Positions 4,521 to 53,825 of a stretch of DNA of 64,000 nt are shown here, piece after piece. Made by a program: the position numbers and the translations under genes. Where the stretch lies: the IMG/VR virus record IMGVR_UViG_3300044712_001462, positions 124,001 through 188,000 of that record; one strand, written 5' to 3'. Below the pieces are notes generated by a model. That model was given only the letters and a program-made list of their open reading frames with translations, was not told the origin of the DNA and ran no database searches. Position 1 is the first letter of the stretch; each line of letters begins with the position of its first letter.

Positions 4521-6926
4521 AGTACCTCGTGAGCTTTCCGGTAGTCTTTTACCAGTAAGTCAAAGTGATGAGTGTGATGATCGAGAGCATATTCAGGGAT
4601 CTGGGCCCCGACGTTCGCAAAGGGAATCAGCGCCGTCGTCAGACTTTGGATCTGCTTACGCGCTGCAGAAAGTGGATGATCTGGACATTGTTCAACATGC
4701 TGAGTTAGCACATCGGCCATGGAAACCGGTGTACTATCCGCAGGTCCGTAGCGATGCCCGCAGTAAACACAGTTTACGTATGTGCCTTCCTGCAAGTCAT
4801 TAACCTGAGATTCAAGCCGCCCAATACGAGCTTTGAGATCCTTAATCTCCTGAGCTTGGGCGTCACAGATCAATGCGAGGTCTGACTTTAAAACATCAGA
4901 ATCTACCTGAAACGTCCTGTTACACTGAGGACAATCCGCTTCAATTAACATTCCTCATCCCCCGTCGTGTCCAACAGAACATAGAGTCGCGCACAACAAG
5001 CCAGGTGTACGGAAACAGCTAACGCCGAGGCTATGTAACTACCCGTCCCTGTAACGTTGTACATAGCTATCACGGCGCAGATGAGCGTCAGCACTACCCA
5101 GAGCAGGCACCACAGTTTCTCACTCATACGATTCATCCTCCTCAGCGTCGTAACTGGGATACTCAGCAGCAGGATCCATCCACTCTCCTACGCAGAACAC
5201 TTCCACACGTCCGTTTTCAAACCGAAAATTATCCTCAAAACCATCCAGCCCTACGGCAGCCATGTAAATACGATTCTTCAACAGGCTGATGATCTGCTTA
5301 TCCACAGCAATCTGACCGCGAAGCTCGTTAATTTCGTTTTTAGCCCGGGCCAGTAATGTGTAAGCATCAGAACTCACACCTTCCAGATACTCTTGAATAT
5401 CCTTGGTGATATCCGTAGACCGTTCTTCCTGTGTCATATTCAGCCTCCTAGTCCTTTAGCCTTGTCCCGCCAGTAATCACGATCGTTTTCAAGTACCTGG
5501 ATAAGACGCGCAGCATCCTTAAAGATACCGGCATTACTCCCGCCGAGTAACTTTCTGATTCTCTCCTTCGGGGTAGCATGAGGATAAAGCGCATCGAGCA
5601 GAAGGTCAGACGCCGTCTGTCCGCGTTCCGCCAGCTCCGCCGCAATCTCCTCCTGTTCGTCACAGTAAGCCTTGAACTTATTCAAGGCTGAAACCAGCGC
5701 GTTGTGACTTGTTTCTGACTTTCCGGCTTGTCGACCAACCCGGATCAGACTCTCAGTAACAAACTTGTTCAGCTCTTCATTACCGTCGCCCATCATTACT
5801 CCTCCTCAGGGTCATCCCACCAATGTGAATCACCATGCTCAAGACCACACTCGACAAACGGCGCATGCTTACGAGCCGTATGCCAGGCCACTTCCTCGTC
5901 GGTTAGTTCCCGACAAGGCTTATCAAAAGAGAAAAGCCACCACTTTCCATTGTGTAAGCGGTGACTTTGATGAAAAAGATCGCCAATCAACTCTGCTAAA
6001 TCACTCGCTTTCATTCATCTCCCATCGTTCATTCTCACGGACCTCAATCTGGTCCAGTGCGGCACACAGAGCGTCTTGTAGCTTATCTCGCTGAGCGCTC
6101 ATATCGCTAATCAGCGACTCAGTCTCCTCAATCGTCGCCACGGACATCGCTTCAGAGCCCTCGAGCTCTTTGATCCGCTCATCTCGTTCTCTAACCATCC
6201 GGATCAGAGTAATAATCGACGAGAAGATCACTTGCCTCACTGCGTCCAGCATGTCCTCAGAATACCAGTCCCGAAGTACCGCTGGGTCAATAATTCCCAA
6301 CGGCCAAAGACCGTTTTCTGTCTGTCTCCACTCTGGCATAGTTAACTCCTTTACCGCAGGTGCCACACATAAGAACGCCAGGTTGGACAGAGATCCTCAA
6401 GGTCTTTCTGCAGTCTATCAAACGGCAGAATGCCACACTGTATGCGCTGCGTCGAATCCCACTGCTTATCGCGGATGACCATCTCAATAGCCCTGATCGC
6501 GTCTCGATCCTGGTCGCTGTACTGCATCCAGCTTGATTCATGCAAAAACGTAGCCACAGCCTTCACCAGCCACTCAAATTTCCGCGTCATCTCCGAGGCC
6601 GAATTCACCGTCTCATAAGAATCAATAAGGTGGTTCCAAGTACACCCTTCCAAAGAATCAGCCAACTCTCGCAGATTATGCGACAACTCACTCAGTGTCA
6701 TATTACCTCCGATACTAATTGTTCCGCCTCTTCTACCCATTCTTCTGGCAACTCTAGTCGCCATTGACCGGCAACGAATTCACCCTCATCTACGCCATCT
6801 AAAGCTCGACCCAGCAGAGTATGTGCTTTCGTGCCCCATATCTTCCAGCGCATAATTTCAGCGCTTCTCCAGCAGCAATCGCACAGGACTTTGGCTGGAT
6901 CGTCGTTGATGGCGTAGGAGCCACAC

Positions 6927-7253
6927 TTACATTGTTGGGACATACATAAGCTCCTCCCACAGGTTCAGGACAGTGCTCCCAATACAGGTGGCGTTGTGGG
7001 ATGTGCCGTACTCGCTGATCCAGCAAGTCGTGTACTCATGCATAAAGAACTCGCCGCCGTGAAAACCCTCGTACGTGGATCCCAGCGCGTTTCGGGCGTG
7101 ATTCAACATGTCTCCAATACACGCATCTTCCTTAGGCTCAAAAGCCAGATCGTCGTAGATACCCCTGAACGAGTCTGGGCTCCCAAATCCGTGAGGGACA
7201 TGGGCCTTAGGATCCTGTTTCTCCAACCACTCAATAAGGTCTTTTAGGAACAC
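6927..7253 (-). CDS. conserved phage hypothetical protein
   Basis: SFRGIYDDLAFEP...YEGFHGGEF.M...T..W motif typical of a recurrent phage family. Confidence 0.55.
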   Translation of the reverse strand: MFLKDLIEWLEKQDPKAHVPHGFGSPDSFRGIYDDLAFEPKEDACIGDMLNHARNALGSTYEGFHGGEFFMHEYTTCWISEYGTSHNATCIGSTVLNLWEELMYVPTM

Positions 7254-7532
7254 GGCATACTCACTTTCTATGCTTCACAGGTACACAATTCCGATTCCGC
7301 CACATGAACACCTCCGCAGGTCGGGCAGTGGTATTTGGCCCTAGCGGCCCGCGCATAAACACGCCACCGCGTGAGCCGTTCATTTTCAGCTTGCGCCTCC
7401 GCGAGCTGCTGTTGGATATTTCCCTCCATCACGAACACGGTCGTCGGATTATGCTCATCATTCTGCTGCTGATTCAGCCAATCGATCAGTCGGCGCAACA
7501 GCTTACCGTCATTCGTTATTATGCACGTACTA

Positions 7533-7697
7533 CTAACCACGATCCCCTCCCGCCTCGGCGGCTTCTGGATTGCGTTTCTCATCTCGTTTGCGTTGCGCGA
7601 TTTCAGCCTCGCGTTTTCGCTCCATAGCACGAAACATGTCATCCCATGTGCAGTAACACGCAAGCCTCAACGTCGATCCACAATTAGGACACAACAC
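7533..7697 (-). CDS. small zinc-finger protein (54 aa, not in the ORF track)
   Basis: GTG start after GGAGGGGATC; translates VLCPNCGSTLRLACYC...EAAEAGGDRG*. Confidence 0.6.
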   Translation of the reverse strand: MLCPNCGSTLRLACYCTWDDMFRAMERKREAEIAQRKRDEKRNPEAAEAGGDRG

Positions 7698-8249
7698 GAT
7701 CCCCTCCCGCCTCTTTGGCTCTACTCGTCACTACTTGAAAAGAACATGACCGTCGCCAGCACAGCTGTGATGAACGCACCCTCCATGCCGAGAACTGCTG
7801 CTGCCACCGCTAGCCCCGTCGTGAAACCAGCCAGGAACATTCTGATGGACCTCATTTATCCCCTCCAGCATTCGTGTAAAACCACAACTCTTTGCGACAT
7901 TTTGCTAGCTCCGCGTTACTCAGGTGAGTAAGCCGCTCCCACTCTCGCGCATTCCTCTGGGCGTCTTCGTGTTCCAAAGCACGGCCTAGCGCCAATCCGC
8001 ACAGAAACGTGAACGCCGATATCGCAACACTCAGAACCACGGTGTCCAGCCAGTCACTCACTCCACACCTCCCGCCTTACTCGACTGATTCCATCACGGC
8101 CTCAAGCTCCATCCATATATTACCAACGGCAACATACCACGAGTACATTCCGCGTCCGTCCTTATCACGAAGTAGCTTCGCAAGTCGCTCAGCGATCTCC
8201 GCTGCCTTGTCAACGTCGAATGCTTCACTACTCACGATCCCCTCCCGCC
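7538..8249 (-). repeat. gene-junction repeat GGCGGGAGGGGATCGTG, 3 copies
   Basis: Plus-strand CACGATCCCCTCCCGCC at 7538-7554, 7695-7711 and 8233-8249; the first two copies are identical over 19 nt. Confidence 0.9.
7721..7855 (-). CDS. small membrane protein (44 aa, not in the ORF track)
   Basis: MRSIRMFLAGFTTGLAVAAAVLGMEGAFITAVLATVMFFSSSDE*; the ATG overlaps the upstream stop. Confidence 0.6.
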   Translation of the reverse strand: MRSIRMFLAGFTTGLAVAAAVLGMEGAFITAVLATVMFFSSSDE

Positions 8250-11200
8250 GCTGCTCGTTTGATTTCTTTCCACCCGCAATCACACACATGTGCCTCACCT
8301 ATTGAATAGGGGCCGTTAAACGAACAACCACCAGCATGATCTCCGTATTTCAGCAGAGCGTTCTGCGCTTCCGCGAGCTGCTTGGTGAGGGATTCAACTT
8401 GTCGCGACATCTCAGATGCCCGCTTTGTCATCGCAATCAACTGCGACTTTCTCCCTTCCTCGTCCAGTGCGTCCCACAGCAATCCACCTGCTGTTGTCTC
8501 ACTCACTACTCCACCCTCCCTTCGCCGCATTGATTTTGTTAATGGTCTCATCCGTGATCGGTGACTGTTCTGCGACTACAGTTAGTGCCTCTACCCGTCG
8601 TCGCAGTTTGGTATTCTCCGCCCGCGCCTCCGCGAGCTGCCTATCACGCTCTGCAACGTCGAGGCGAGCTGCATCGCGTTCTGCTTGCGTGGTGCCAATA
8701 TCTCGGCACGCTTCCGTGAATGCGTTGAACCACCGCAGTTTTTCTGCATTTGCCTCCGCGAGCTGCTCTCGGAGTTCATCGTTCTCCTGCCGTTCGCGAT
8801 CGTACAGTTCCCATACGTCTCGTTCTCTGCTCACGATCTCCGCCCTTCTTTCTCCGCAATAGCCGCAGCTGCAATCGTGGCATCCGCGACCCAAGCCAAC
8901 TTCATGGACTCAATCTGTTCTCGCAGTTCAGTGATCTGGTCTTCGCGGTTGTTACAGGCCTTAAGCGTGTCGAGGTATTTTGCATGACTGTCACGCGCTG
9001 CCTGTTGATTATCCTCAAGCTGTTTCTTGAGCTCGGCAAGTTGCTTTTCATGCCTTTGAGAAATTCGCAGAGCCAGTCGCTCTCTCGCCTCATCGAACAT
9101 GGCAGCACCAACGCTGGCATAAATGCAGCAGATGTTGTTGATGTCCTTGCGGACTAATTCAGCTTCACTCATGATTTTTTACCGATTTTTGGATCCTGTA
9201 TTTGCAAACTGATAAGAAGTACGCTGTCGGCTGTATTGTCGCGTGCGATTCTGAAGTCCGTTTGTCCAGATGAATCCACACGCACGACAGCGGTATGCAC
9301 GCCTACCATCTAGTGAGCGGCCTTTTTCTACATCTGCACATCGACAGCGCTCACACTTCACAATCTTCTCCTTCTTCCTCGCTGCTGTAGTTCGGATTGA
9401 TCTTGCCGCAGCGGATACAAAATGGTGACTGAAAATAACACCATCTCTCATAGTACAAGAGACCTTTATCTCGCGTACTCACCAGAATTTTGGATATCCA
9501 TCTATGCCCCAGCAAACCACACAGAAACCACCTCAGCATTACTCACTCCTCCACCTGTTTGCGAACATCCATTTTAGCTCTACGCCGAGCACGCTTATTC
9601 ATGGCTCGCTTCACCTGTTTACCCAGGCCTGTCCAGTTGTCATACACCTTGAGAACCCAGCGCCATCCAGACGTCCAATCCATTTCGTTTCCATTCTTGG
9701 CAGGCTCTTTGCGCATCTCTGGTCTCCCTATCAACTCAGAACTCGTATCAAACGCTAATTCCGCGAGCGCCATGTGATAAACATCCAGCCACCTATCGGG
9801 CCAGTAACAAGGATCGTGGTCACAAAAAGGAAGAGGAGCTATGCGCTCCTCGTGATCTGCAATATGGGACGCTCTGAGAGCCAGGTTAGCTGTGTGGTGC
9901 TTCATTGTCCCGTTCGGTAAAACACATGGTTATTCGTCCTCCTGATCGACGGGTTTATCCTGTTCGGGATCGTTTTCGTCCCTATCGGGATTATCCACTA
10001 GCCACGGATAAAACTCTTTCCAGTCCTCAACTAGTTGTCGCAGCTCAGGAATACCTCCCGACATCGGCAGCAACGTAGTCTTAAAAAGGATTTTCGCGGC
10101 TTCTCTAGCTTCCCGTAGATCTTTGTGAATATCCGTCTTGTTCTCAGGAGCCAGATACTTCTCGTGGAGACTGTAAGAGTGTGTGTATGCGGATTCCTGT
10201 CAGCATCCCTGTGCATCCAGCCAGTACTCCGTGTCTGGGATGAACAGCAACACAAAGTGGTCGTCTCGGTAGTCGACTGATTCAATGCGGCCTGTGGCCC
10301 CTCGGGCTAGAGTCTTATCACAATGCTTCCAGCCTCCAGAACAAGGTACTTCTCCCACGATTTTGGCTCTTTCGCCCTCTTTAACCGGCGCAAACCGAGT
10401 AAGAAGCGCCTCACTATGTTTCACCAGTTTATCCAACGTGTACTCGATGGGCCCTTGTCGAAACTTGTTCACCGCTTTGTACAAATACTGTAGAGCCTCT
10501 TTAACGTCATCAATGTCCATCGCAGTCCTCTTCCTTTTTGTGAAAACAAAGGTTCACACGGCGCTCTAGAGCCCTCAATCTGTTCAGTTCGGTAGTCTGG
10601 TCCTCCATCTTCCACCGCAACCGCTCATACCTGAACGACTGAATGACCACCGTCACCGCAGACGCCAGACATAAAACAAACAACATGACATGATCAAACG
10701 CGCTCATCTGAATTCCCTTTCAGCTTGTCGTACTGTTTCCATACCTGACAGAGGATGCACGACTCTTCATAATCAGGACAGCGTTCTCCCCATTGCTCCT
10801 CGATCGCCTCCACGATGGGATCCTTTTCCGGCTCAGCCTCTTCCTGACTGCAAGGTCGCACTGAAGACAAAAACTCAGACTGTCGGATGCGCTCCGCCTC
10901 AAACTCCTGACAGACCTTTGTAATAGCGCTATCTCGATGTCGGATCGACTCTAGGAGCCAGTTGACGGTGAACGTCTTTTGTTCCAGCTCCTTCTTCGCG
11001 GTGACCAGCTGCTTGATCAGCTCTGATTCCCTTCTTGTGCAGTTCCAGTACTGCCCATCATGCCCCCACCAGTACCCATCTGGAAACTCAAGAGCTTGGT
11101 AATCAGTCAGCCCGTCTTCTACTTTGATACCTGTAAAACGCATGCGATCTCCTACTCTGAAAGTCGTTTCACTGTTTCCCTGAGCCGCCGAATCTCTTCC

Positions 11201-14189: not shown

Positions 14190-14713
14190 CTGGCGCGAGA
14201 GAGCTCATTCGCCTGCAACACACCCGTCTTCCTCGTTGCCACAGTAATGTGGAACTTGAACTCATTGTCTTTAGGAAGCGGCGTGAGCCCATAGCTTTTT
14301 CTTAGCTGTTGGAGCTCAGGCGAATTCACTTCAATAAACCAGACGCGAGAGATACCGGGCCACCCGGCCGGTTTAACCGACCGGAGTGGACCCAGTGTAT
14401 ACCTGAAGACCTGACCCCGTTCTTTGACTTTGTCAGGTCCGCCGATCTGGTCAAGATCTTCGGGCCGCAGCACAGAAATATGTGCATTGAACCCCGGCGG
14501 AAGTTCGGCTCCCGGTTCATGAAGCGCGGCGAACGCTCCACGTACAAGAGCGTTGGGGACTGATAGCAGGCCCCAACCGGACTGGGAGATGAACAATCGA
14601 CCTCCTAAGCTGTACGACAGCTCAGGCGTATCTGCCGCCCGTTTTACGGCGTACCTGCCGAGCAGTTCGGGCAACTGCAGATCGTAACTGTCTGTTATCG
14701 ATATCAGAGACAT
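14186..14713 (-). CDS. 2H phosphoesterase (LigT/Acb1-like superfamily)
   Basis: Two HxS/T motifs, AHISV and FHITV, about 76 aa apart in a 175-aa protein. Confidence 0.75.
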   Translation of the reverse strand: MSLISITDSYDLQLPELLGRYAVKRAADTPELSYSLGGRLFISQSGWGLLSVPNALVRGAFAALHEPGAELPPGFNAHISVLRPEDLDQIGGPDKVKERGQVFRYTLGPLRSVKPAGWPGISRVWFIEVNSPELQQLRKSYGLTPLPKDNEFKFHITVATRKTGVLQANELSRAS

Positions 14714-14909: not shown

Positions 14910-15887
14910 TCAAACGGCTACGGCCTGATCCGAGAACTCTGCAATTGCTTCCTGCCAGGTGGGCATCTCAATCGGAGTCAGGGCTTCCAACTTCTCGATC
15001 GAGAGGGGTGTGGAGTGCACAATCTCAGCAGGCGAATCCCCCATCAGCTGAGCGATCTCCTTGTGCGGAGCGGGTTCGAAAACACGCCCCTGCCAATGAA
15101 TCGCGTTTCGGAGCCGGTATGCAAAGTCAAAGGGCGTGGTCACACCCGAGTTTGCCACATGGTACAGGCCCTGAGGTACCGTCTTCCGGTTCTCAGCCAG
15201 CCAAATGATGACCTTAGCCAGATGCGGCACAAAGCACGGAGTAATCTTCAGATCGTTCGCCAACAAGTGCGAAGGCATTTGTGACGTTCTAGGAGGAGAC
15301 AGAACCTGCTGAGTCAGATCCGTCCGCCACTGACGGTGCTCTGAATACGGAGAAAACAGATGGCCGCATCGGAGAACCCAGTACGAGAAGCCATCGAGCT
15401 GACCCGTCTGGCCCAAACGCATGACTGCGTGCTCGGAATAGGACATGGCAGAGGCCAGGAAGTTGGGAGGGGCCACAGGATCGGTCTCTGTGTACAGATG
15501 AGATGAGGGCTGCATCCCCATCCCAAATACCGAGTGGCACGATAGATGAATTAGTGGGATCTTGAGGAAGGCACCAAGCTTGGCCAGGTTATCTGCCCCC
15601 CGGACAAGCGTATTCCACGTTTGTTCCCTGTTTCGGGCGGCTGCCCTCCAGTCTGCAACTCCCGCGGTGTTAACAATGACGTCTGGCTTCAACAGCTCAA
15701 GCTGCTCGCGGCAAGCCTGAAAATTCGAAACATCAAGCATCTCTCTGGTTTTAACAACGTAATTCCTGACCCCTCCTCCATTCTGTGCATCAAGTTCTCG
15801 TACAATCGCTGATCCTAATTGTCCCGTCGTCCCGGTAATCAGTATCTGGGCGCGTCTTCTCGATACCATATCTTCCCCTATTGACAA
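14910..15887 (-). CDS. rmlD: RmlD (dTDP-4-dehydrorhamnose reductase)-like extended SDR, catalytic motif degenerate
   Basis: ILITGTTGQLG, KPDVIVNTAG, YTETD, GLYHVAN and MPTWQEAI. The canonical STDYVF and YxxxK positions read SCHSVF and LASAM. Confidence 0.75.
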   Translation of the reverse strand: MSIGEDMVSRRRAQILITGTTGQLGSAIVRELDAQNGGGVRNYVVKTREMLDVSNFQACREQLELLKPDVIVNTAGVADWRAAARNREQTWNTLVRGADNLAKLGAFLKIPLIHLSCHSVFGMGMQPSSHLYTETDPVAPPNFLASAMSYSEHAVMRLGQTGQLDGFSYWVLRCGHLFSPYSEHRQWRTDLTQQVLSPPRTSQMPSHLLANDLKITPCFVPHLAKVIIWLAENRKTVPQGLYHVANSGVTTPFDFAYRLRNAIHWQGRVFEPAPHKEIAQLMGDSPAEIVHSTPLSIEKLEALTPIEMPTWQEAIAEFSDQAVAV

Positions 15888-17603: not shown

Positions 17604-18787
17604 GCAGCTTCAGCCGTCTCAGTCTCCTTGTCAGAGGGCTCCTCAGCCGGGACCGGGTCAGGTCGCAACACCTTTCTTCGGGTCGTCTCAGAAGACATAC
17701 CCATGATCGAGGTGAACAATTCATCCATGCGTCCCAATACGAACTCACGCTGCGTCCCATCTTTCCGCAAACGATTCGCTACCGTCGTAGCATCCTCGCC
17801 TACCCCTTTCAGAACGTTGTGGAGCTCTTCGAACTGGGCCCCAATCTGGCGACCATTCAAGATGCCAAACGGCTCAATCTTCGACTTGTACTCCTCAATC
17901 GCTTTGAAGACGCGCTCAATCACGCCATCCTTAAACGACTTTTGCGTACCATCCTGCCAGCCGCGGATCGAAGACACCATCTGCTGCAAACCCATCGCCA
18001 TCGCTTCTTCGATCAACTCCGCCTGCTTCTCAGCGACTTCGGTAAATTGCGCATTCAGTCGCGCCTGTTGTCGCCGGTATTCAGCCGGGTTCACCGCCTT
18101 CAAATACTCCGGCAACTCGAAGTTGTAGGTCTCAAAGCCCACGCCGATCTCCTGGTGGAGCCGTTCAGACGTCGGGTAATCCGACTCGTCATGCAACTCT
18201 CGGAGACGCTCCCGACACGTCGCCATGACTTCTGACCAGTTATTAGCCAGCTCATCAATAGCCTGCCGGAAGTCTGAGATCAGATCGTTGATCTCATCCA
18301 GGAACACACGCACTTCCTCATTCTGATCCTGTTCGGTCTCCCCGCGGACACCAAACAAGCGCACCCCATCTTCGGGGTACTTGAGGGTTTTCGATTGCCA
18401 GTACTTGATGAGCTTGGCCTTGGCCACCTGAACCGCGTGAATCGAAGGATGCTTCGCATACAACACTTTAGTAAAGCGGAGATGCGAGGGATCGCAGTCC
18501 ACGCTGCCAGCCAGCTTATGCGCTGCATCACCCTTAATCTTCCGGCTCTTACTCAGGTCATTGAACTTCAACCGGAAAGCTCGGGCGACTGCCTTAATGG
18601 TCTGCCCAGCTTCACGATAGCGCTCACGCTGTACCGCACGATCTTCTGCTGGAGGCAGATCCGCCAGCATCTTATCCACCTGCTCTTTGGTCAGGTGCTT
18701 CGTTGTCGTCTTCTTCTTTTTCTTCGACGACTTCTTCCCCACGTGCTGCTTAAGCTTCTGTAACAATTCAGGAGAGATACTTGCCAT
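17600..18787 (-). CDS. helical coiled-coil protein, DUF3150-like, partner of the AAA ATPase
   Basis: YWQSKTLKYPEDGVRLF...RERLRELHDESDYP motif; coupled to the ATPase through TAATG. Confidence 0.55.
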   Translation of the reverse strand: MASISPELLQKLKQHVGKKSSKKKKKTTTKHLTKEQVDKMLADLPPAEDRAVQRERYREAGQTIKAVARAFRLKFNDLSKSRKIKGDAAHKLAGSVDCDPSHLRFTKVLYAKHPSIHAVQVAKAKLIKYWQSKTLKYPEDGVRLFGVRGETEQDQNEEVRVFLDEINDLISDFRQAIDELANNWSEVMATCRERLRELHDESDYPTSERLHQEIGVGFETYNFELPEYLKAVNPAEYRRQQARLNAQFTEVAEKQAELIEEAMAMGLQQMVSSIRGWQDGTQKSFKDGVIERVFKAIEEYKSKIEPFGILNGRQIGAQFEELHNVLKGVGEDATTVANRLRKDGTQREFVLGRMDELFTSIMGMSSETTRRKVLRPDPVPAEEPSDKETETAEAA

Positions 18788-21700
18788 TAGTTAACATTGG
18801 GTCGAACTACCGACCGCCTCTTACCTCCGCCAGTGATGTCTGACACGCTGACCACTTGTTTCGCTCCTACATCGTAAAGCCCCGGAGCTGAGGCGTTCAA
18901 ACATCGTCCAGAGGCCCAGGCTCGCAGATCCTGCAGTTTGGTATCTGCCATTCGAGTGACAGGTACCACCTGCTTCGCAGCTTCGTCCAGAGAAACCTCA
19001 CGAATTGCCGCTAGGCGACAGCACGCCTTAATTTCAGCACCCGTCCAGCCCTCACTCAGCGTAAGGAGACTGTGCTTCACCTTGTCTGTCCGCGACTCCG
19101 CATGGCCATACAGATGCAAGTAGATCTGCCAAATAGCCAGGCGCTCTTCCTCTGTGGGAACATCCACAAAGAACACCGCATCAAAACGCTCCGCCCGAGA
19201 GAATTCTGGTGGGAGCATCGAGATGTTGTTGCAATTATGAACCACAACCCCAGACGCCATAAACGAGTGATGGGGCTCCTCAATAACCACATCGTAAACA
19301 GTCTGCTCACCAAGCGGAGAGGGTTCAACAGACACCACACTGACCCACTTCTGAGACCAAATACGTCGAACCTGCTCCAGCTCGTCTGCAATTTCGCGAG
19401 CCGCAGACTCGGACATCTTGGCAACATAGTGATCTACAATCACCTGCCACAACTCCGCCGTATCCGCCGATATTAGCGGAGTGTACTGCCTGTAGTTTGG
19501 CAACACCGATGTATAGCGACCAGCCGCTTTTAAAATAATCTCCAAACAATCATGCATTCCCGGAACACTCCGAACTCCATCTCCGTTAACCTCCTTAGGC
19601 CTACATATCCGACTTTTCTTGTCCGGGTGCTGAAACGGAATGAGCTGTGCAAACCGATGACAAGACTCCGAATCGCGGATACTCAGCTTAGTTACATCCT
19701 TGCGAGGAAGCTTTCGCGAAATCGTTGCAACAGAACCTTGAATATCAAATCTCGTTAAGAGAAGTCGAAGCTGGTCGATCATGACTGGGCTAGTTACCGC
19801 AATCTCAATTCGCCCACGTTTACTGATATAGCCCTCGGCGTCAAAAAGACCCGCTATAAAGGACAACACCACATCCTTGTCCGGAGATGCCATTACATCT
19901 TGAGGTATTTCTCGCACACATTGCAGGCATAAGATGTCTGGAAAATACTGCTCAAACCAATCTAACAGAAGACGACGATCCAGATAGATGTAGTACGACT
20001 GTGCTTTTGGACGCTTATCAATAACCTTTGGCTCTACTCCAAACAAACTACGAATCAGCGAGCATAGGTGCTGAGTCAGACCTGCGCTAAACTCAGATAA
20101 TTGAAGCCGATGGGCCTTCCTGTTTAAAAGCTTACCTTTACCCCCGTCCCCGCAGCAAAATCCAAGAAAATACGCCAATTCTGCTGTTAAGTACTCTGGT
20201 TGTTTAACAGGTTTCTGTCGGGATCGTGCTGGTAACGGCAGATACCGTTTTGCGGGTTTTGATCCCACTGGAGCTTTAGCTTTAGAAAGCAATAGATCAT
20301 CAGCAGTAAGATGCTTCGCTTCTTTCTCAGCTATTTTACCGTTTTGAAAGACAAAGAATCTGTGATCAGGCGTTGCATCGATGAACCCAGCTGACGTACG
20401 TATGCGTAGCATGTCGCGAATACCGCGGCTGTACACTAGCCCGGAGCCAGATACCCACTGACCAGTCTCGTCATCCACACTCAGGAACGTTTCACGTTGG
20501 CCTACAAGCGACTCAAGTTTACAGATACGCCCGTCCGCCAACTCAACAAGTGTTCCACCGGCCAAACACGTACCGATGAAAAACACATCTGACGTATGGT
20601 CGTTCAACCAACTGAGTAACTTACCAAAAATGCGATCACCAGAGCCGCCATCTGTCATCGATGATGACTGACCTGCTCCGGACAGTGCTTTCTCGATTTC
20701 CACTTGTGTTACGAGATACCCGTTTCCGGTACCTCTCTTACGGTTACCCGTAAGGTCAGACTATTTCATCCTGTCGCTGCGACAGGGCCCCCGTTTCGAG
20801 ATCACTTGATCTCTACTTCCTTTCGGAATAGTCGTTGAACGTTTCAGTCATAGACTGACTTCGCTGCAGATAATCCAGGCTAGTGGACTTCCCTGCAATT
20901 AGAGGGCTTTGCATCGGCATGTCACCACGCCGAGGGACTAACGTTAATCCACAAAGAGAATGCACGGCTGCATAGCATCAGCCAGCTTCAGAGCCATCCG
21001 GACATTGGCATCCGTTTCACCCTGAAACTTCGATCTGAGTGCGCCCATATCCATCATGAGCACTTTGCGCTGGGTCTCATTACCCATCGCCTTAATGATC
21101 GCACTCTTACCGGCACCAGGCACACCAAGGAGCAGCATACCACGAGGCTGAAGCAGAGGATTATCTCGTCGCCGAAGTAGCTGCTTCGAGAACTCCTTGA
21201 ATTGCTGCAACCCACCCAACTGCGCATAAGTGTCTGTGCCTTTGTAGATCTCCAGTACACCGCGCTTCTTGAGATCCTGAGCCTTCAGGTCCCAGATCTC
21301 ATTGGGATCGAGCTTACCGGTCTTCGCCAGAGACAAACTCAGAGCATCCTCGAAACCACGTCGAGACAATCCCGCCGCAGCATCTAAGACCAGTCGTTTG
21401 TCGTCATCCGTTTTAGGTAACTCCGTCTCCGCACAGATGTTCTTAGCGATCGACCAGAGTTGTTCCTTACCTGGCAGCTCGTGCTCCAGGATTACAAAGT
21501 CCTTCTCTAGCTCTCGAGGGATCTCAATCATCGGAGAGAGCACAATGGCGCAGCAGGAGACCTGGCCCTCCGCCTTACAATCCGTTACCGCGTTCTGCAG
21601 AGCCTGCATGATGGGTAGGTTGTGAACCAGCTGCTGGTGATGGAAATTCTTGAGAATCCAGATGACGTGAGTAGCACCCTCGCTACCCTGGGACTCTTGA

Positions 21701-21981
21701 GCCTGCCGAAGGGCCAGAGACATCACAGGCATGTCCTGAACCAACGGGAGAGGCTTCATCTGGTAGTTAGTATTCTTCGAAATGAAATCTCTTAGCGTCT
21801 CAGCTGTATCTCGGGGGCATTTGAGGCCCGCGGCGAAGTCCCACACAATGACCGGCCATTGTCTCTCAGCACATACCGGTACGATCTCTGCGATAGCATC
21901 CCCAAACTCATAAGTCTCAACCCAAAGGCCGGTGAAACCGGCTCGCAAATACTGCCGTACTTGCTCCCCAAGTGCTGGCAC
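18787..21981 (-). CDS. Ycf46-like AAA+ ATPase, join(21981-20947, 20700-18787); ~537 aa after intron and intein removal
   Basis: Walker A GVPGAGKS; Walker B ILFVD|EIEK restored by splicing; sensor-1 FIGT|CNNI restored by intein excision; arginine-finger region PPEFSRAERFD. Confidence 0.9.
19234..20568 (-). mobile_element. intein (445 aa) with LAGLIDADG homing endonuclease
   Basis: N-terminal CLAGGT, block B ATPDHRFF, LAGLIDADG motifs LAYFLGFCCGDG and FIAGLFDAEG, block F TVYDV, C-terminal VVHN followed by +1 Cys. Confidence 0.93.
20701..20946 (-). ncRNA. group I self-splicing intron (246 nt, no ORF)
   Basis: The 5' exon ends in U, paired U.G in P1 (GGAU/GUCC). Core elements P AATTGCAGGGAA, Q ATCTGCAGC, R GTTCAACGACTA, S GAAATAGTCT; terminal G. 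Removal fuses GAT|GAA in frame. Confidence 0.93.
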
Positions 21982-23447: not shown

Positions 23448-23729
23448 TTACACTTTGTATCCGCGTTTCCTCAATTCCGCGTCAGCATGTACCACGCTGC
23501 CAGGGATACTAGTAGAGCGCATGGGCTCAGGGCGCGTCGAGGTTGCCTCAAAAAAACACTGGAGAGCGCGCCTGCTCGTAAAAATCCGTCCACCTATGCG
23601 CAGAGTATCTAACAGAACCCCGCGATAACCGACGGTGGCCCAGCGCCAGACTGTCGAAGAAGATGTTTTCCCAGGTAACGCCTTCGCTGCCTCAGAGAGC
23701 GAAAGCACGTCTTCGTCGTCGAATTTCAA
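23448..23729 (-). CDS. DUF1580-like HTH protein, putative excisionase/recombination directionality factor
   Basis: LSLSEAAKALPG...STVWRWA..G.RGV.L.T.RIGGRIFTSR.AL..FF; overlaps the integrase stop. Confidence 0.75.
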   Translation of the reverse strand: MKFDDEDVLSLSEAAKALPGKTSSSTVWRWATVGYRGVLLDTLRIGGRIFTSRRALQCFFEATSTRPEPMRSTSIPGSVVHADAELRKRGYKV

Positions 23730-24919
23730 CCAAATTCCTCCGCAATTGATCGAGCCAGCTTCAAGTTCTTCTCCGCGTAGATTTCGCTGGTGCGAATATG
23801 CTTGTGCCCTAACAACACCTGGCTGCCTTCTACCCCGTACTTTTCACGTACGCGAGTAGCAAGGTTGTGCCGGAGCTGATTAGGAGCCCACGGAGTTACT
23901 CCTGCTGTGATACACGCTCGCTGAACTGCGCGCCGATAGGAATTGTGGTCATAGTGTGTCCCAGGTGATTTCACACGTCTTATCTTGCGGTTAGAGCCTG
24001 GTTTGTTACCGCACGATACGGGAGTAGTGCGCCGCTTATGTCGGGCGGCTAAACGCTGCTCTTCCGCCTCCCGCGGTGAAAAGCAGTATTCCAAGGGTGA
24101 TCGTTGCAAAAAGCGACGGAGTATTTTCTGCGCCCGTCGCCCTATCGAAATTTCCCTGCGAGCATCTTCCTGGTGTGCCAGCTTGTGATCAGGTGGCACG
24201 TAGAGCCACACGGGATCTTTCATGGAAATATCACACGGCCTGAGAAGACAGATCTCCATCGGCCTCATCCCTGTCCAGTACTGCAAACGAACCATCTGCG
24301 CCACCACTTTGGGCAGGTATGGAATCGTCTGTCTCAAGTCTTTCTCAGGCACCGGCAAAATCTTTTCGGTCTCCCTGGCCTTCGTCAGCCCTTTTCTTAA
24401 CCCTTCGAGGGTATTGAGATGAGCATGCGTATTCTTCTCTACCAGCCCAGCGCTCTCTGCCCACTTGAAGAGCCGCTTCACACAACCGATATACCGGTTC
24501 ACCGTGGAGCGCGAGAGCTTGCCTTCGCGGACTAACTGGGACTGGAGATCTCGGAGAGACCGAGCATCAAAGCGATCAGCTAACGTGTGCCCATAGTATT
24601 TGAGCAGCACATCGTTAGCCGCCTTGATTACCGCTACCTGGGAGGATAGCTTCCCCCTCTTAGACTGGTAACGGATATCCACGAACTCGTCCAGATAGCG
24701 CAGGACGAGGTGGTTGACGAACAGCGGTTGAGACCTCTCTTTGGCCACCACCGCGGACCCAGGATGCACCTGCCTCCCAGCGAGATGGTCGGCAATGAGC
24801 TGCGTACCCTGCGCCTCTGCAGAGCTCTTTTCCCGGCCTAAATAAATTCGCTTTCCAGCGATGTGAACGTAGAACTGACCGGTTGCGGCATGCAGACGAA
24901 CTTGGGGTTTGCGTGGCAT
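23726..24919 (-). CDS. int: tyrosine integrase
   Basis: Arm-binding N-terminus (RLHAATGQFYVHIAGKRIYLG); catalytic TGMRPMEI, NQLRH, LLGH and IYA. ATG at 24919. Confidence 0.92.
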   Translation of the reverse strand: MPRKPQVRLHAATGQFYVHIAGKRIYLGREKSSAEAQGTQLIADHLAGRQVHPGSAVVAKERSQPLFVNHLVLRYLDEFVDIRYQSKRGKLSSQVAVIKAANDVLLKYYGHTLADRFDARSLRDLQSQLVREGKLSRSTVNRYIGCVKRLFKWAESAGLVEKNTHAHLNTLEGLRKGLTKARETEKILPVPEKDLRQTIPYLPKVVAQMVRLQYWTGMRPMEICLLRPCDISMKDPVWLYVPPDHKLAHQEDARREISIGRRAQKILRRFLQRSPLEYCFSPREAEEQRLAARHKRRTTPVSCGNKPGSNRKIRRVKSPGTHYDHNSYRRAVQRACITAGVTPWAPNQLRHNLATRVREKYGVEGSQVLLGHKHIRTSEIYAEKNLKLARSIAEEFG

Positions 24920-24929
24920 GGCTGACCTT

Positions 24930-25207
24930 TTTAGTTGGTAGTCGACTACCAACTAAACTGTAAAGCAATCAGCAGGCCAGCCCTGGCTGTTTTCCTAAGT
25001 TCTTATGCTGTAAGGCTTTACTGAGTGGGCCGTGACAGACTCGAACTGTCGCCCTCTTGCATGTCAAGGAAAAACAGGCGAAATGAGGTCACTCGTAAAA
25101 ACGGCCCAAAACCTTTACAGATAAGCACTTAAGCGTCATTGCATACTTCGCAGCTGGCTTTACTTTTTGCCCATTTTTTCAGCGATAGTTGGTAGTTAGT
25201 TGGTAGT
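24930..25207. other. attP site: tRNA-derived core flanked by arm-type repeats
   Basis: TAGTTGGTAGT at 24932-24942, inverted at 24945-24955, and tandem direct at 25186-25196 and 25197-25207; the core at 25026-25068 lies between them. Confidence 0.8.
25026..25068 (-). pseudogene. 3' half of tRNA-Val(GAC), attP core
   Basis: Reverse complement C-TTGACAT-GCAAG-AGGGC-GACAG TTCGAGT CTGTC-ACGGCCC-A gives the anticodon loop, T-arm and acceptor 3' strand; the 5' half is absent. Confidence 0.85.
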
Positions 25208-34493: not shown

Positions 34494-35576
34494 AGACCGG
34501 CCTTTCTTTACTGTTTGACCTCACCATCCAGCAGCATTACACCATCGTAATGCGCTTTCTGGATCTTCTCGACCAGATACTCCCACACGTCGTCCCACGC
34601 CTCTTCTTCGCAATCACCAATCCCCACAGCTGTCACTGTGAACTCGTATGCCGCCATCACACACTCCTATACTTATCTCGCAACTCGCAGTAGAGCCGCT
34701 CGATCCCTTCGTCCGCCTCAATCCACATCGTTTCATACGGTGCAATGACTTTCTCCGCCGCTTCAATGACTCGCTCCGCAGTCTCTTTCACCGTATCCGC
34801 CCAGGGAACAGACACAGTCTCACTGAAGAAAAGACACCAGTCATCGCCGGTCCACTCACCAGAGCATCCCACATCACAAACCACGCTAAGCGCTAACATG
34901 GAATAACTAGATTTGTCCTCTGCGGTTAAGTCCCATTCACACTCATATGTCGGGTCAACCAGTGTTTTGTGGCCCGATACCCGTACGGTAACAGTCTCGT
35001 CGTTAGCCCCCAGAATCGAATCAATCCCCGTGCAACCTGTCGGCTCCAGGTCCGCATCCTTCCAGCCAAAACTGATTAGATCGAAACACCCAGACAAGCA
35101 CCGCCCGTCGTCGTCATAGCGCTTCAGATTGCGGCCTTCATTCATCTCTCGAAGGGTTATTCGTAACTCATCGATCGCGGCAGCAAGTTCGACCTCCTCC
35201 TGTTCACGGCAATACCAATCCCAGTCTTCGCTAGGACATCTCGCCATTTACTCCTCCTCATCCTCTTCTTCCTGCGCCGGTCTGCGGTTTGCCACGTCTT
35301 CAAACGTGCGCCCATCCGAGTCCTCCCCGCCAAAAAAGCAATAATCAAAGACATGCTCGAGGGCTGCATAAGTCTGGGGGTCCAGCTCCGTCGCATCCTC
35401 GTATTCCTCGAAATACGTGTTTACCAGCAGAACAAAAGCATCGGTAAGCTCCTGTTCTTTGAAGTGGTGCTGTATGGATTGCACCAAACAGTTAAATCTC
35501 GCAACTGGATCTTCTTTCATACCCGTCGCTCCTTTGGCTAGACATTCAGACAGAAATGGCAACAAAGAGAACTCTC

Positions 35577-35590
35577 TAATAGCGATATCA
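35577..35590. promoter_or_regulatory. operator-like motif inside a leader hairpin
   Basis: TAATAGCGATATCA just downstream of promoter 35602; embedded in the inverted repeat at 35571-35596. Confidence 0.55.
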
Positions 35591-35601
35591 GAGAGTCACA
35601 T

Positions 35602-46261: not shown

Positions 46262-48063
46262 TAGGTCCTCTTCGGCGTGTGAACATAGTGCATGGCAGTC
46301 AAAAATCCCCAGAACCACAGTACCCCAGTCCCGAATCCGCACACAAGCGCAGTCAGAAAACTGTCTGAGATCTGGTGCCCTGCCACAAATCCCAACCCGG
46401 CGCTCAGACAGACATCAATCAGAGCCCGATACGGGTAGGGTTCCGGTTCCGACGGTTTCAGCACAATTTTCGGTTCCTGGTAAATCTGGTCCCACATTTG
46501 CGGACTGATGCGTTGAATCATCTTTGCTCTCCTTGATTTCTTGGGATAATCGGGCGCTCGCTTCGTCATATTCGCGCAGCGCCACAACCATCTCGGTTTT
46601 CAAGACACGGGTGTACATATCTCCGCCTATGTCTCCGTAAGATGTATAGGCTTTGAGTAAGTCATAGAATCTGCGCCGGTACTCCGATTCCAAGCCGATG
46701 GCTCGAAGTATGGAGTAGCCCCAACTCAAGTGTGGAGGCCCCAAGCGCGAGAGGTATCGCCAATTCGGACTGCGAACACTTCGCCTTTACCAGGCCCGTG
46801 ATAAAGAAAGCCGCCGTTAAAGCTATAGGCGTAATAGACCGGTCGGCCCTCGTTGCTCCGCAGATCCCAGATCGTTTCCTTCAGCTCAGCTCCGAACCAG
46901 GTTTGCCTCGTGATGCTCAAACGACGATCAGTTTCTACGTCTACCTCAACGTCATACCACTCCGGATGAGCCATAATTACAGCACTCCGCGTCTCTGCGT
47001 ACAGCTTGGGATGAACAGGCTCATACAAACTGACGGATAATCCGTGAAAAGTACCATCATCGCAGGCCACTACCTTGCGCGAAGGCACCTTATAGTGCAG
47101 ACCAGCGTAGTCATACTCGCAGTAGTCTCCATTGCGCACCAGGTAGTCCAAGCCCTCTCGGAGATCTCTAACAAGTTTCTCAGCCATCTCCTGCTGACCT
47201 GCGGCATACAGCCCCGTAAGCCAGCCGTGAATATGCGCCAGGCGAGTCTTTCCTTCGTTGGACAAATACAACCGTCGATACATCTCTGTGCGGTCAAGGA
47301 TACGCGCTAACTTGCCATATCCCAGGTCTAAAAAATCAAGCTCAGGCGTTCGAACGTCAGTTGCCACTAATTAGAGCCTCACTTTGACCGGTCTTTGTAA
47401 TACGCAGAGTAACAAATAAACTCCCCTATCTCATCCAAATATCCGTTGTCAATCAACGCCCCATAGAATCCCTCGCCAGTCTCTGACGAATGAATCTCGG
47501 CACGCTGCCATAAAGCAACAATAGCTGCTAGTCGTACTGACTCAGCCTCATGGTTAATCTCACGCGGCATTGGTTCTCCCCGCTTCCTGATGCTCCACAG
47601 CATGAAGGGCATCAAACACAAAATCAGCATACTCCGAATCACCCAAGTGCTTTCCTGCCTCGCGCAGCACTCGTGAGATCTTGTCCACAGCTGCCTTGAA
47701 TTGCTCCCGAGACATCGGATAGCTCTCAGACAAACGATCCAAAATGGCCTCCAGTTGCTCTACGGTCATCTCGGCAAGACACAGCTGGATGACCTGGGAA
47801 TACCCGTTTACCGAAGGTTCAATATGCCTCCAGATATCGTCGATCAACTCATTCCTCATCTAGTAGGTACTCCAGAATCTCGGCCATTGACTCTTTCACC
47901 GGCAACGTACTTCGACCCGACATGTGGACATAACACCCTGCCACACCGTCGGTGAGCTTAATCTCCGAGATCGCTGCAATGTGTCTGGTGAAGATCACTA
48001 GCCGCTCTGTGTCAAATGACTGCGACGTAAGATAGATGTACTCAGGCATAGCGTCTCTCTTTG

Positions 48064-48077
48064 TAATAGCGATAACA
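48064..48077. promoter_or_regulatory. operator-like motif TAATAGCGATAACA
   Basis: Exact intergenic copy upstream of 47849-48049. Confidence 0.55.
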
Positions 48078-49150
48078 GAAACTACACAGGCAGCCAGATG
48101 CTGTCCTCGACTTCCACAGGGTGAAGCCCCGTGTCATGTAGCCACTGCTCTACGAAGTCAGACAGGTCCAAATCTAGCTCGTCCTTACACAACACGACCT
48201 GTTTACCGTTCACAGTGTCATCCACGAAAAAACAGAATTGCAACTGCTCCACGAGAAGCTCTATCTGCTCGAGTTGCTTGACTTCTTCATCAGTCAGATT
48301 TTCAAATATCCCTGACCTGAATCTAAATCTCGGCAAAGCTAATCCCATTACGCGCTCTTCCTTTTCTGTTCAAACCGGTCTGCAGCCCAGGCTGCCTCTC
48401 CCGTAAATTCCACTTCCTCATAGTCCACAGGCATGTAATCCCAGACACACGCCATCATGTAATCCGGGTCGTCGTACCCACAGCATCCTTCCACGTAGAG
48501 TCCATCCTCGTCGTAGATCGAAAACTGGTAATACTCGCCGTTGACCCAGGTGTTGTAGGATCCCAGAAAATTGCGGGCATACTCCTTACGCTTCTCATAA
48601 TCCTTAGGCAGGAACTTGGCGTTCTTGGAGATAATGAGCCCACCTACATCCGCAGTATCCCAGCGACATTGCATCCCCTCGCCGCGGAGACTCCAGACCG
48701 TACCGCTGTGCTGGTAGCAGCTGAGAATGAATGCCGAACCTACATCCAGCTTTCTCCGCATCCCGATTGTGGCAGGTGTCGGATCACCAAACTCGTCTCT
48801 TGGACCCAGGTACTTGAAAGGGTCCTGGAAATTAACATGCCGATCACAGAACGAAACAATCTCCCAGTCGCCATACTTACACGGGCTTTCAGCATCTGAA
48901 TCGTATTCCAGCCGCACTTCGTAATTCATACTGGATCCCAGATATCCAAAGTCATGCGAACATCCGTCACGGATTGAAACTGCGCTGGGCAAATACTCAC
49001 CAGGTCGCCCTCTTCGTCATAAACTCGCTCGTCTTCTTGTGAGACATCTAACACACGTAACACGACACACCTCCTATAAATGAAAAGAGCCTCACCGGTT
49101 TCCCGATGAAGCTCTTTATCGCGCGCCACTCTTTTCAAATGCCAGAGCAA

Positions 49151-53552: not shown

Positions 53553-53803
53553 ATTATGAACTACGTCGGAGACGGGCGACTAGATCAAGCGTCTTCTTCC
53601 TCGAGCACTCGGTACTGACGACGACACTCCGTAGCCAAATCTCTCAGATTCGACGAGAACTCTTCTACACTGTACCGACCAAACAGCAGCACATGGGCCA
53701 ATTGAACTAGTTTGTCCTCGACCTCTGGACGGTGAGCTGTGAAATGCTGATTGTCGCATACTGTCAACAACTCATACAAAGCATGAAGCATGTGATCCCT
53801 CTC

Positions 53804-53817
53804 TAATAGCGATAACA
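53804..53817. promoter_or_regulatory. operator-like motif TAATAGCGATAACA
   Basis: Exact copy at a gene boundary. Confidence 0.55.
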
Positions 53818-53825
53818 CAAAGTCC

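Follow-up and report, generated by a model that had tools for sequence, protein, structure and literature searches.

A 64,000-nucleotide (nt) stretch of DNA (the window: bases 124001-188000 of the 224,528-bp IMG/VR virus record IMGVR_UViG_3300044712_001462) carries at 7268-9172, with the minus strand coding, an array of eight small genes (A-H, of 113, 111, 92, 52, 69, 44, 54 and 90 amino acids (aa)) in which two short words recur: a 17-nt junction word, at which one gene ends and the next begins, and a 15-nt word, which encodes QLAEA inside genes. Our reading, which we put at a probability of roughly 0.75, is that the array is a coupled operon of modular ORFan genes shuffled at these two words (both held in fixed orientation) by short-homology recombination. 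Sequence comparison shows that crossovers at the words occurred several times, between loci of this genome and between phages, and that the array has been transferred, whole or in part, between phage backbones of differing GC content (40-57%). All relatives are metagenomic contigs, several of them short, and contigs rather than raw reads were compared; coordinates are those of the window unless assigned to the genome (the whole record) or to a contig.

The genes of the array, from A to H, are:

8831-9172, minus strand: gene A, 113 aa, ATG start, the first gene of the array
8499-8834, minus strand: gene B, 111 aa, GTG start, GTGA overlap with the stop of A; coiled coil with two QLAEA words; a three-way mosaic
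8228-8506, minus strand: gene C, 92 aa, GTG start, overlap of 8 nt; QLAEA lies between an N-module and a Cys motif (H..GC...CDCG), and the tail is AAAGGDRE
8077-8235, minus strand: gene D, 52 aa, GTG start within an exact 17-mer; its TAA stop abuts the next junction core
7852-8061, minus strand: gene E, 69 aa, GTG start, N-terminal hydrophobic helix, C-terminus NAGGDK
7721-7855, minus strand: gene F, 44 aa, ATG start, ATGA overlap, hydrophobic
7533-7697, minus strand: gene G, 54 aa, GTG start, CxxC...CxC motif, tail EAAEAGGDRG
7268-7540, minus strand: gene H, 90 aa, GTG start, overlap of 8 nt; a QLAEAQAEN coil precedes KYHCxxCGG...CxC; paralogues are Z (genome locus L004) and a5 (contig L019)

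Stops and starts are in close contact: GTGA is shared at A/B and ATGA at E/F, B/C, C/D and G/H overlap by 8 nt, and the intergenic spacers measure 15 nt (D/E) and 23 nt (F/G). GTG starts are found in six of the eight genes compared to 72 of 346 (21%) genome-wide (binomial estimate ~0.0015). Between 6500 and 10000 there are no promoter-like sites, and terminator-like sites occur at the level of shuffled sequences (no excess), which argues that A-H form one translationally coupled operon. That the genes are real is argued by modules common to other phages, where synonymous changes far exceed non-synonymous changes: A and its counterpart a1 in the JGI contig L019 show 25 synonymous and 5 non-synonymous codon differences among 45, and A compared to the Logan contig L029 shows 6 synonymous vs. 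1 non-synonymous change. None of the array proteins (ten proteins scanned) matched Pfam at E <= 1, and Pfam and PHROG scans of array proteins and paralogues returned coiled-coil noise only; the ESM Atlas model of X (a paralogue described below) is poor (predicted template-modelling score, pTM, 0.34). As to function, a guess of low confidence is that the proteins serve host-takeover or anti-defence accessory roles under diversifying pressure.

The words, and the one long segment that two of them bound, are located as follows (SD, Shine-Dalgarno sequence):

8832-8848, minus strand: A/B junction word, 13 of 17 positions, in a different frame of A (EGRRS), with GTGA overlap
8504-8521, minus strand: B/C junction, a second word type, AAKGG tail GCGAAGGGAGGG followed by GTG; the same type is found throughout contigs L034 and L035
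8233-8249, minus strand: junction word, exact 17-mer GGCGGGAGGGGATCGTG; tail of C, SD and GTG of D
8059-8076, minus strand: D/E junction, core GGCGGGAGG plus GTG, non-coding
7853-7866, minus strand: E/F junction, GGAGGGGAT plus ATG, with ATGA overlap
7695-7711, minus strand: junction word, exact 17-mer, non-coding, located past the TAG stop of F
7538-7554, minus strand: junction word, exact 17-mer; tail of G, SD and GTG of H
8752-8766, minus strand: first QLAEA word in B, exact 15-mer GCAGCTCGCGGAGGC; here lies the L029 crossover that fuses B to C, and here the 96% segment in common with X has its 5' end
8626-8640, minus strand: second QLAEA word in B, exact; here the segment in common with X has its 3' end and the one in common with W begins
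8367-8381, minus strand: QLAEA word in C, one mismatch; second arm of the L029 fusion; homology between C and a2 (L019) stops just past it
7395-7409, minus strand: QLAEA word in H, exact
8617-8766, minus strand: 150-nt segment, 96% identical to genome 208779-208928 (gene X, 77 kb distant)

A sequence-only reading of this DNA had reported the 17-mer at 7538, 7695 and 8233, degenerate junctions near 7855, 8061, 8506 and 8834, the 15-mer at 7395, 8626 and 8752 with a one-mismatch copy at 8367, and protein ends AGGDRG (G), AGGDK (E), AGGDRE (C) and KGGWSSE (B): all three 17-mers are exact and on the minus strand, every degenerate junction is present and lies on a start codon, the 15-mers were found exactly as described, and the protein ends are correct. 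The 17-mer consists of the last codons of the upstream protein (A-G-G-D-R), which include GGAGG, a 5-nt spacer, and the GTG of the next gene. Translated as AGGDR in C and G, the word falls in a different frame in A and, after D (TAA) and F (TAG), outside open reading frames (ORFs): the alternate frame in A and the non-coding positions after D and F argue that it is conserved as DNA or RNA, not as peptide.

Neither word is expected by chance: shuffled sequences gave 0.23 matches to the 17-mer even with three mismatches tolerated, and 0.17 matches are expected for the 15-mer. Among 13-mers occurring at least three times there are, besides these two word families, very few others. Under the codon usage of the phage CAGCTCGCGGAG accounts for 2.2% of expected QLAE spellings; it is the spelling in 8 of the 10 QLAE copies at two loci vs. 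none of the 5 in-gene QLAE elsewhere in the genome, and the probability of the nine-codon tail word under the same usage is ~1e-5. Identity of the words at synonymous sites, a further claim of the earlier reading, is borne out by these odds and is not due to codon bias. In L019 the words retain 96-100% identity to those of the window across 23-29 nt, despite synonymous change in 25 of 45 codons of the A module, and the 29 nt of DNA encoding the tail of G are 96.6% identical to two L019 junctions.

The clearest joint is found in L029, a 1.3-kb Logan contig. Positions 294-691 match window 9148-8751 at 98% (A, plus B up to its first 15-mer). Over positions 675-830 the match is to window 8382-8230, at 91%, and spans C between its 15-mer and the C/D junction; the two matches overlap by 17 nt, which are the QLAEA word itself. 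The product, P0007, joins residues 1-27 of B in frame to the C-half of C. Past the C/D-type junction word L029 carries a 90-aa gene without counterpart in the window, followed by 166 nt that are 97.6% identical to genome 208582-208417 (the N-part of gene Y): this match begins in the tail/junction word and ends at the first QLAE codons of Y, after which the sequences diverge. Given the B::C fusion, the new gene and the Y segment, relatives are not collinear through the array, as would be expected if, as proposed earlier, it is subject to rearrangement.

Comparisons within the genome give a similar picture for gene B, which is a three-way mosaic with crossovers at the 15-mers. Its nt 68-218 correspond at 96% to nt 80-230 of X, from the first QLAEA word to just beyond the second and with unrelated flanks; its nt 194-317 match W at 72%, from the second QLAEA word to the B/C junction. 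X (genome 208535-209008), Y and Z at 208 kb and W (genome 15009-15284) at 15 kb have modules in common with B, C and H, and the locus encoding the first three (L004) holds, outside the window at genome 208.3-208.8 kb, a fourth exact 17-mer and two further exact 15-mers. Over 55 residues X and the N-half of B are 91% identical, the C-part of X resembles the Cys-motif C-part of C (38%) and the tail of X is AAAAGGDRE; Y contains QQLAE twice, and Z resembles H. Although D and Y are unrelated, 23 nt are identical between the C/D junction and the X/Y junction (genome 208557-208579). Two side observations concern these regions. Logan contigs of the source run X1 stop inside the 8617-8766 repeat, and the IMG/VR assembly across it is only partly backed by independent contigs (X1 record 1 extends to 8678; L029 covers 8751-9148). 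A third, more diverged array of ~15 small zinc-ribbon/coiled-coil genes (L005) lies at genome 12.1-16.3 kb: one of its genes ends AEAAQAGGE, the C-half of W is 68% identical to that of B, and QLAE is spelled in other codons.

A-H and their paralogues constitute a modular family, composed of variable N-modules or CxxC zinc-ribbon-like knuckles, a QLAEA(R/Q)A coiled coil and the tail (E)AAEAGGD(R), in which the Gly-Gly tail codons serve as SD of the next gene and are followed by spacer and GTG start. The ORFs that bear the 15-mer had been described as otherwise unrelated; this does not hold, since they belong instead to one modular paralogous family. In A an N-domain (RKDI.NICCIY..VG.AMFDE) is followed by a coiled coil in which QLAE is written in other codons (9032-9043); the N-domain is kept in L019, L029 and P0005 and in 54 representative clusters, the latter from a profile search of 1.84 billion representatives and nearly all of 53-130 aa. 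The N-module of C reappears in a2 and P0009 with other C-parts, and its C-part in P0007 and X.

Further recombinants occur in other phages. The JGI contigs L019 and L020 contain a seven-gene array as an island of 54.6% GC (L019 6661-8383) in a backbone of 40.3% GC; in the L019 island the 17-mer is found twice in exact form, besides three GGCGGGAGG variants that have TGATG overlaps, and a QLAEA 14-mer occurs in three exact copies and a fourth with one mismatch (QLADA). Its genes recombine the same parts: a1 is the N-module of A up to QL(A/E)E followed by another C-part, a2 is the N-module of C up to QLAEA followed by another C-part with the tail of G, a4 combines the C-end of A, the middle of Y and the B/H coil, and a5 bears the Cys end of H. 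An ORF with HNH_3 and AP2 matches just under the cut-off (L019 8868-9389), likely a homing endonuclease, was noted 485 nt downstream of the L019 array. P0005 and P0009 (ENA) are additional recombinants of the N-modules of A and C, and P0005, P0009, P0011, P0013 and P0015 present the same modules in other combinations, P0015 being the A domain joined to the C-domain of the genome gene at 15460-15753. In run X4 (activated sludge) a 655-nt contig retains only window 8830-9054 at ~96%, which is the C-half of A: homology is lost at the A/B junction (8830) on one flank and 11 nt from the QLAE of A on the other. A second X4 contig matches the 25-nt junction word alone. Finally, in L033, a complete 69-kb IMG/VR phage of 57% GC, all four array QLAE are CAGCTCGC(G/T)GAGGC and the tail KAAEAGGE is followed by ATG; only the words (20-29 nt) align to the window.

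A different pair of words is used in L034 (where the array stands beside a small terminase gene) and L035, which share the architecture. The coil RLAAAEA occurs as one 21-mer in all three copies of L034 and as one exact and two near copies in L035, and the AAKGG tail is spelled GCAGCGAAGGGAGGG and precedes ATG. One module, ..PFAKV..HHYDHFVGHYRAA (71% nt identity), has QLA-type/AAEAGG flanks in L029 and RLAAAEA/AAKGG flanks in L034. Words are accordingly homogeneous within a lineage and can differ between lineages, a pattern that points to concerted evolution or to selection on the words.

To relate segment ends to words, copies of the 17-mer with up to 4 substitutions and of the 15-mer with up to 2 were accepted, and an end was counted if it fell within 10 nt of a word in both sequences. 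For high-scoring segment pairs (HSPs) of at least 85% identity, 8 of 12 ends are at words (per-end null 0.14, P = 4.4e-5); for HSPs of at least 70% identity the count is 8 of 24 (P = 0.014). A looser test, based on the minimum distance in either sequence and judged too permissive, gave P = 0.14, or 0.03 with the automatic feature list. Because the events are few and not fully independent, and because BLAST ends stop at conserved islands, the individual high-identity joints (the L029 fusion foremost) outweigh the P value.

A number of points weigh against shuffling at the words. Besides being few and partly dependent, the breakpoint events each come from one metagenomic contig, and the natural tendency of alignments to end at conserved islands inflates the statistic for weaker HSPs. 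Some ends are off the words: window 9148 (the 5' end of A in L029), 9054 (X4) and two ends 35 nt from a word. X4 also swaps 5994-6357 and 9613-9907 (affecting the gene at 6001-6339 and much of the ORF at 9543-9905) for 26 and 25 unrelated nt, with neither word involved: these replacements beside the array show that words are not needed for mosaicism here, and that ordinary gene-boundary mosaicism also acts. The words are inherited signatures of a paralogous family as well as crossover sites. No Pfam match to RecA/UvsX, RecT, ERF or AAA_24 (Sak4) was obtained in the 224-kb genome, though divergent recombinases could escape such a search; a SbcC/Rad50-like ATPase (genome 3456-5570) is the sole recombination-related protein detected. 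Lastly, given that the module common to L029 and L034 is flanked by different, lineage-specific words, homogenisation of or selection on the words fits better than simple crossover inheritance. The proposal that joints lie at the repeats is supported on the whole: it stands for the L029 fusion, for the B/X/W switches and for two thirds of high-identity ends, but not for some breakpoints and neighbouring gene-sized indels. Likewise, the label of a cassette-shuffling diversity region is apt for in-frame swaps of genes and half-genes at words, but what is seen is evolutionary mosaicism, with no programmed mechanism shown.

If shuffling at the words is correct, its mechanism is probably ordinary recombination. 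Both words always have the same orientation, and the QLAEA word always the same reading frame: any crossover between copies of a word should therefore give an intact gene. A crossover at the QLAEA word would generate a new N/C combination, and one at the junction word would deliver a new neighbour already supplied with a ribosome-binding site. The joints would be products of general recombination across short homologies (15-29 nt of identity), formed in replication or co-infection when direct repeats recombine and delete what lies between them, or through unequal exchange or gene conversion. Such exchanges could also keep the words identical at synonymous sites (concerted evolution), and the words would be held in place by selection, both for strong ribosome binding and for the peptides of coiled coil and tail. 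Identities of 15-29 nt are near the minimal lengths for exchange of the RecA or single-strand annealing protein type and for slippage or annealing of direct repeats. A Pfam-level search of the phage genome found no HNH_3 or RVT_1 match, and no inverted repeats exist at the words (within 7000-9400 there is one weak 13-nt pair, unrelated to them): with no recombinase, HNH_3 or reverse-transcriptase match and no inverted repeats, nothing points to a dedicated enzyme.

Could the words be kept for function only, the junction word as a strong ribosome-binding site and start, QLAEA for the coiled coil, with coincidence of segment ends a by-product of alignment? GGAGG does stand 5 nt ahead of the start codon, the word is kept even where non-coding, two unrelated IMG/VR contigs use the identical 17-mer as SD plus GTG past a stop codon, and GGAGG is the generic SD genome-wide. 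However, an SD requires 5-8 nt rather than 17-29 identical nt, and peptide constraint leaves synonymous sites free; above all, the switch in L029 between 98% and 91% homologies to two window genes, within 17 nt common to both, cannot be anything other than a recombination joint. The function-only explanation is contradicted by the L029 and B/X events at least, and overall it is very improbable. That the mosaics are chimeric metagenome contigs joined at repeats is extremely unlikely: although source-run contigs break within the 150-nt B/X repeat and each variant is known from one contig, Logan contigs are built from 31-mers, which the 17-nt word of the L029 fusion does not reach. Fragments from two other rhizosphere studies match the window exactly across the G/H, F/G and D junctions, and the module swaps are seen repeatedly in data from JGI, ENA, Logan and IMG/VR.

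The extended junction word (perhaps QLAEA too) might be bound or cut by a translational regulator, a small RNA or an RNase, encoded by phage or host, in the manner of the start-associated sequences (SAS) of cluster K phages, and this would then be what chiefly conserves the words as DNA. Such a role is unlikely though far from negligible, and could coexist with recombination. The word is longer than an SD, strictly oriented and ahead of a subset of non-structural genes; there are two lineage-specific word sets, each homogeneous in its arrays, and in L033 the words alone are conserved. Yet only 4 exact copies exist in 224 kb, limited to two arrays of one gene family, RNA folds of six junction contexts are no more stable than shuffles (z -1.6 to +1.5, with just a 4-bp mini-stem), and no candidate regulator was identified. 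Quite improbable, in our estimation, is a dedicated cassette system, in which word pairs are sites for a specific recombinase or nuclease (integron-like, or acting through excised circles) that mobilises cassettes. The lineage-specific word sets could be so explained, as could the L019 array, a compositional island with the HNH_3/AP2-like ORF nearby; and a tyrosine (phage-type) integrase is encoded at 23726-24952 on the minus strand, 15 kb from the array, with no link to it seen. Against this, the words lack inverted repeats and hairpins, reverse transcriptase and HNH_3 matches are missing from this phage, joints resemble plain homologous crossovers within shared identity, and a recombinase is adjacent to the array in none of the window, L029, L033, L034 and L035. 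The sequence-only reading had likewise seen no dedicated recombinase, and apart from the distant integrase none was detected. A broader idea, which is improbable, is that each lineage keeps its own pair (QLAEA and AAEAGG in the window, L019, L029 and L033; RLAAAEA and AAKGG in L034 and L035) as a dedicated signal for an unrecognised recombination, gene-conversion, hotspot or excised-circle activity that builds combinatorial zinc-ribbon/coiled-coil libraries passed between unrelated phages: if true, this would be an integron-like system whose attachment site doubles as ribosome-binding site.

Several known systems resemble the array in part. PeSLs (promoter-early stem-loop elements) of T4-type phages are ~100-bp intergenic units of promoter and terminator (a sigma-70-like early promoter and a stem-loop; 2010, PMC2839356; PMC4122927), and excised mini-circles bear one chimeric unit (PMC2839356; PMC4122927). 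In both cases a large myovirus has a plastic region whose small ORFan genes are separated by a short conserved repeat, indels and replacements are bounded by the repeat, and the shuffled gene arrives with its own expression signal; for the array, gene changes so bounded are seen between L029 and the window, between L029 and L004, and between B and X/W. The array word, by contrast, measures 17-29 nt, is partly coding and supplies SD and start rather than transcription signals, a second, intragenic word permits half-gene swaps, and no unit of promoter and stem-loop terminator is found. SAS of cluster K mycobacteriophages have, in the portion of Pope et al. (2011, PMC3203893) drawn on here, the consensus GGGATAGGAGCCC, stand mostly before ATG in many copies over half the genome and have a proposed role in translation; that portion describes no link to recombination (PMC3203893). 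Like SAS, the junction word is an asymmetric SD-core word in single orientation just ahead of the start codons of different, non-structural gene families (GGAGG is 5 nt before GTG, within the 3-8 nt typical of SAS, with all copies on the coding strand). Unlike SAS, it is a different word with 4 exact copies in 224 kb and ~4 degenerate copies, confined to two arrays, mostly before GTG and coincident with mosaic joints.

In T-even gp38 adhesins glycine-rich motifs separate hypervariable segments that are 'easily interchanged' (Trojet et al. 2011, PMC3157838). Conserved in-frame motifs flank variable segments within a gene here too, but gp38 is a single virion adhesin of known function with Gly-rich structural motifs, whereas the array has a coiled-coil motif in a family of small non-structural proteins. 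Exchanged fragments in lambdoid phages, products of relaxed homologous recombination, have traces of homology at their borders (De Paepe et al. 2014, PMC3945230). Segments of 96-98% identity with shared words of 15-29 nt at their ends are of this kind; the differences are that no Rad52-like recombinase was detected in the phage (nor any RecA, RecT, ERF or AAA_24 match in its genome) and that homology consists of a defined word pair reused within one operon. There are no attC-type inverted repeats with adjacent IntI, as in integrons, and no RVT_1 match in the genome, as diversity-generating retroelements require; variants moreover differ by replacement of whole segments, not by point changes. 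The array works like PeSL shuffling and gp38, and the junction word looks like SAS, but the array belongs to none of these, given the lack of a promoter/terminator unit, the different consensus and distribution, and the different kind of protein.

Whether phage mosaicism stems from random illegitimate joins followed by selection or from recombination at conserved linkers is a long-standing question; the idea of conserved linker sequences at gene boundaries reportedly goes back to Susskind and Botstein in 1978 and to Clark et al. in 2001. The array offers a compact case of defined linker words doing two jobs, in which each crossover product is expressible and in frame. It is a new variant of motif-mediated modular shuffling and a new example of accessory-gene reshuffling, distinguished by a joint in which protein tail, SD and start codon coincide, by a second in-frame joint within genes, and by lineage-specific word pairs. 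Recurrence in several unrelated backbones, and with another word pair in at least one other lineage, suggests a general route for diversifying small accessory proteins.

Database searches beyond those described yielded little. Scans of IMG/VR with single proteins (B and a neighbouring 395-aa protein) found no relatives, a word search with X recovered only X itself and B, word searches with A and C gave a few relatives, and a profile scan of IMG/VR with the N-domain of A gave one distant contig (L032), which is without words. The exact 17-mer had four single-copy hits in IMG/VR with unrelated flanks, which were counted as chance; extended QLAEA words had two unrelated hits, then none. Hits to a 22-nt tail word in metagenome, virus and GTDB contigs were mostly chance matches in GC-rich DNA (including Streptomyces and Glycomyces), and the same context was found only in L021, L027 and perhaps L028. 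The nearest Pfam-bearing clusters in an ESM Atlas feature search were Ead/Ea22-like (PF13935, score 0.84) and Lar (PF14354, 0.78), rejected as below the level of evidence (all Atlas leads scored under 0.9), with no Pfam match at E <= 1; the likeness to Lar and to Ead/Ea22-like mosaic coiled-coil proteins of lambdoid prophages is that of small early-region phage proteins with a coiled coil or zinc ribbon.

The record as a whole (CheckV completeness 100%) is marked as a large tailed phage by a baseplate-J protein, the SbcC/Rad50-like ATPase and a helicase; the genome is myovirus-like, and the array sits in its non-structural part. GC skew is negative along the entire genome, and 334 of 345 genes are on the minus strand (simple gene caller). 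The sequence recurs in three rhizosphere metagenome studies. Being a CheckV-complete virus contig from rhizosphere runs, the record lends no support to the earlier label of a Planctomycete prophage.

Other features of the window include a tRNA-Thr with anticodon TGT (1983-2054), a gene for an RmlD/epimerase-like sugar-nucleotide enzyme (14910-15887, minus strand) and, on the minus strand at 18787-20703 and 20944-21981, an AAA+ ATPase split by an intein that has a LAGLIDADG domain, present as two ORFs ~240 nt apart, an N-part (AAA) and the intein with the AAA-lid part. The 22-nt word TCTCTAATAGCGATAACAGAAA or its complement, probably a regulatory word of promoter or operator type, occurs in ~10 copies genome-wide in both orientations, among them minus-strand copies in the window at 35573-35594, 48060-48081, 53800-53821 and 14689-14710. 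A palindrome-centred word, TTTGTAATAGCGCTATCTC, has four genome copies (window 10917-10935; genome 57317, 74889 and, in part, 9520), and at 58571-58614 a 15-nt unit with the core ACCGGAGGCTCATC is repeated three times in tandem.

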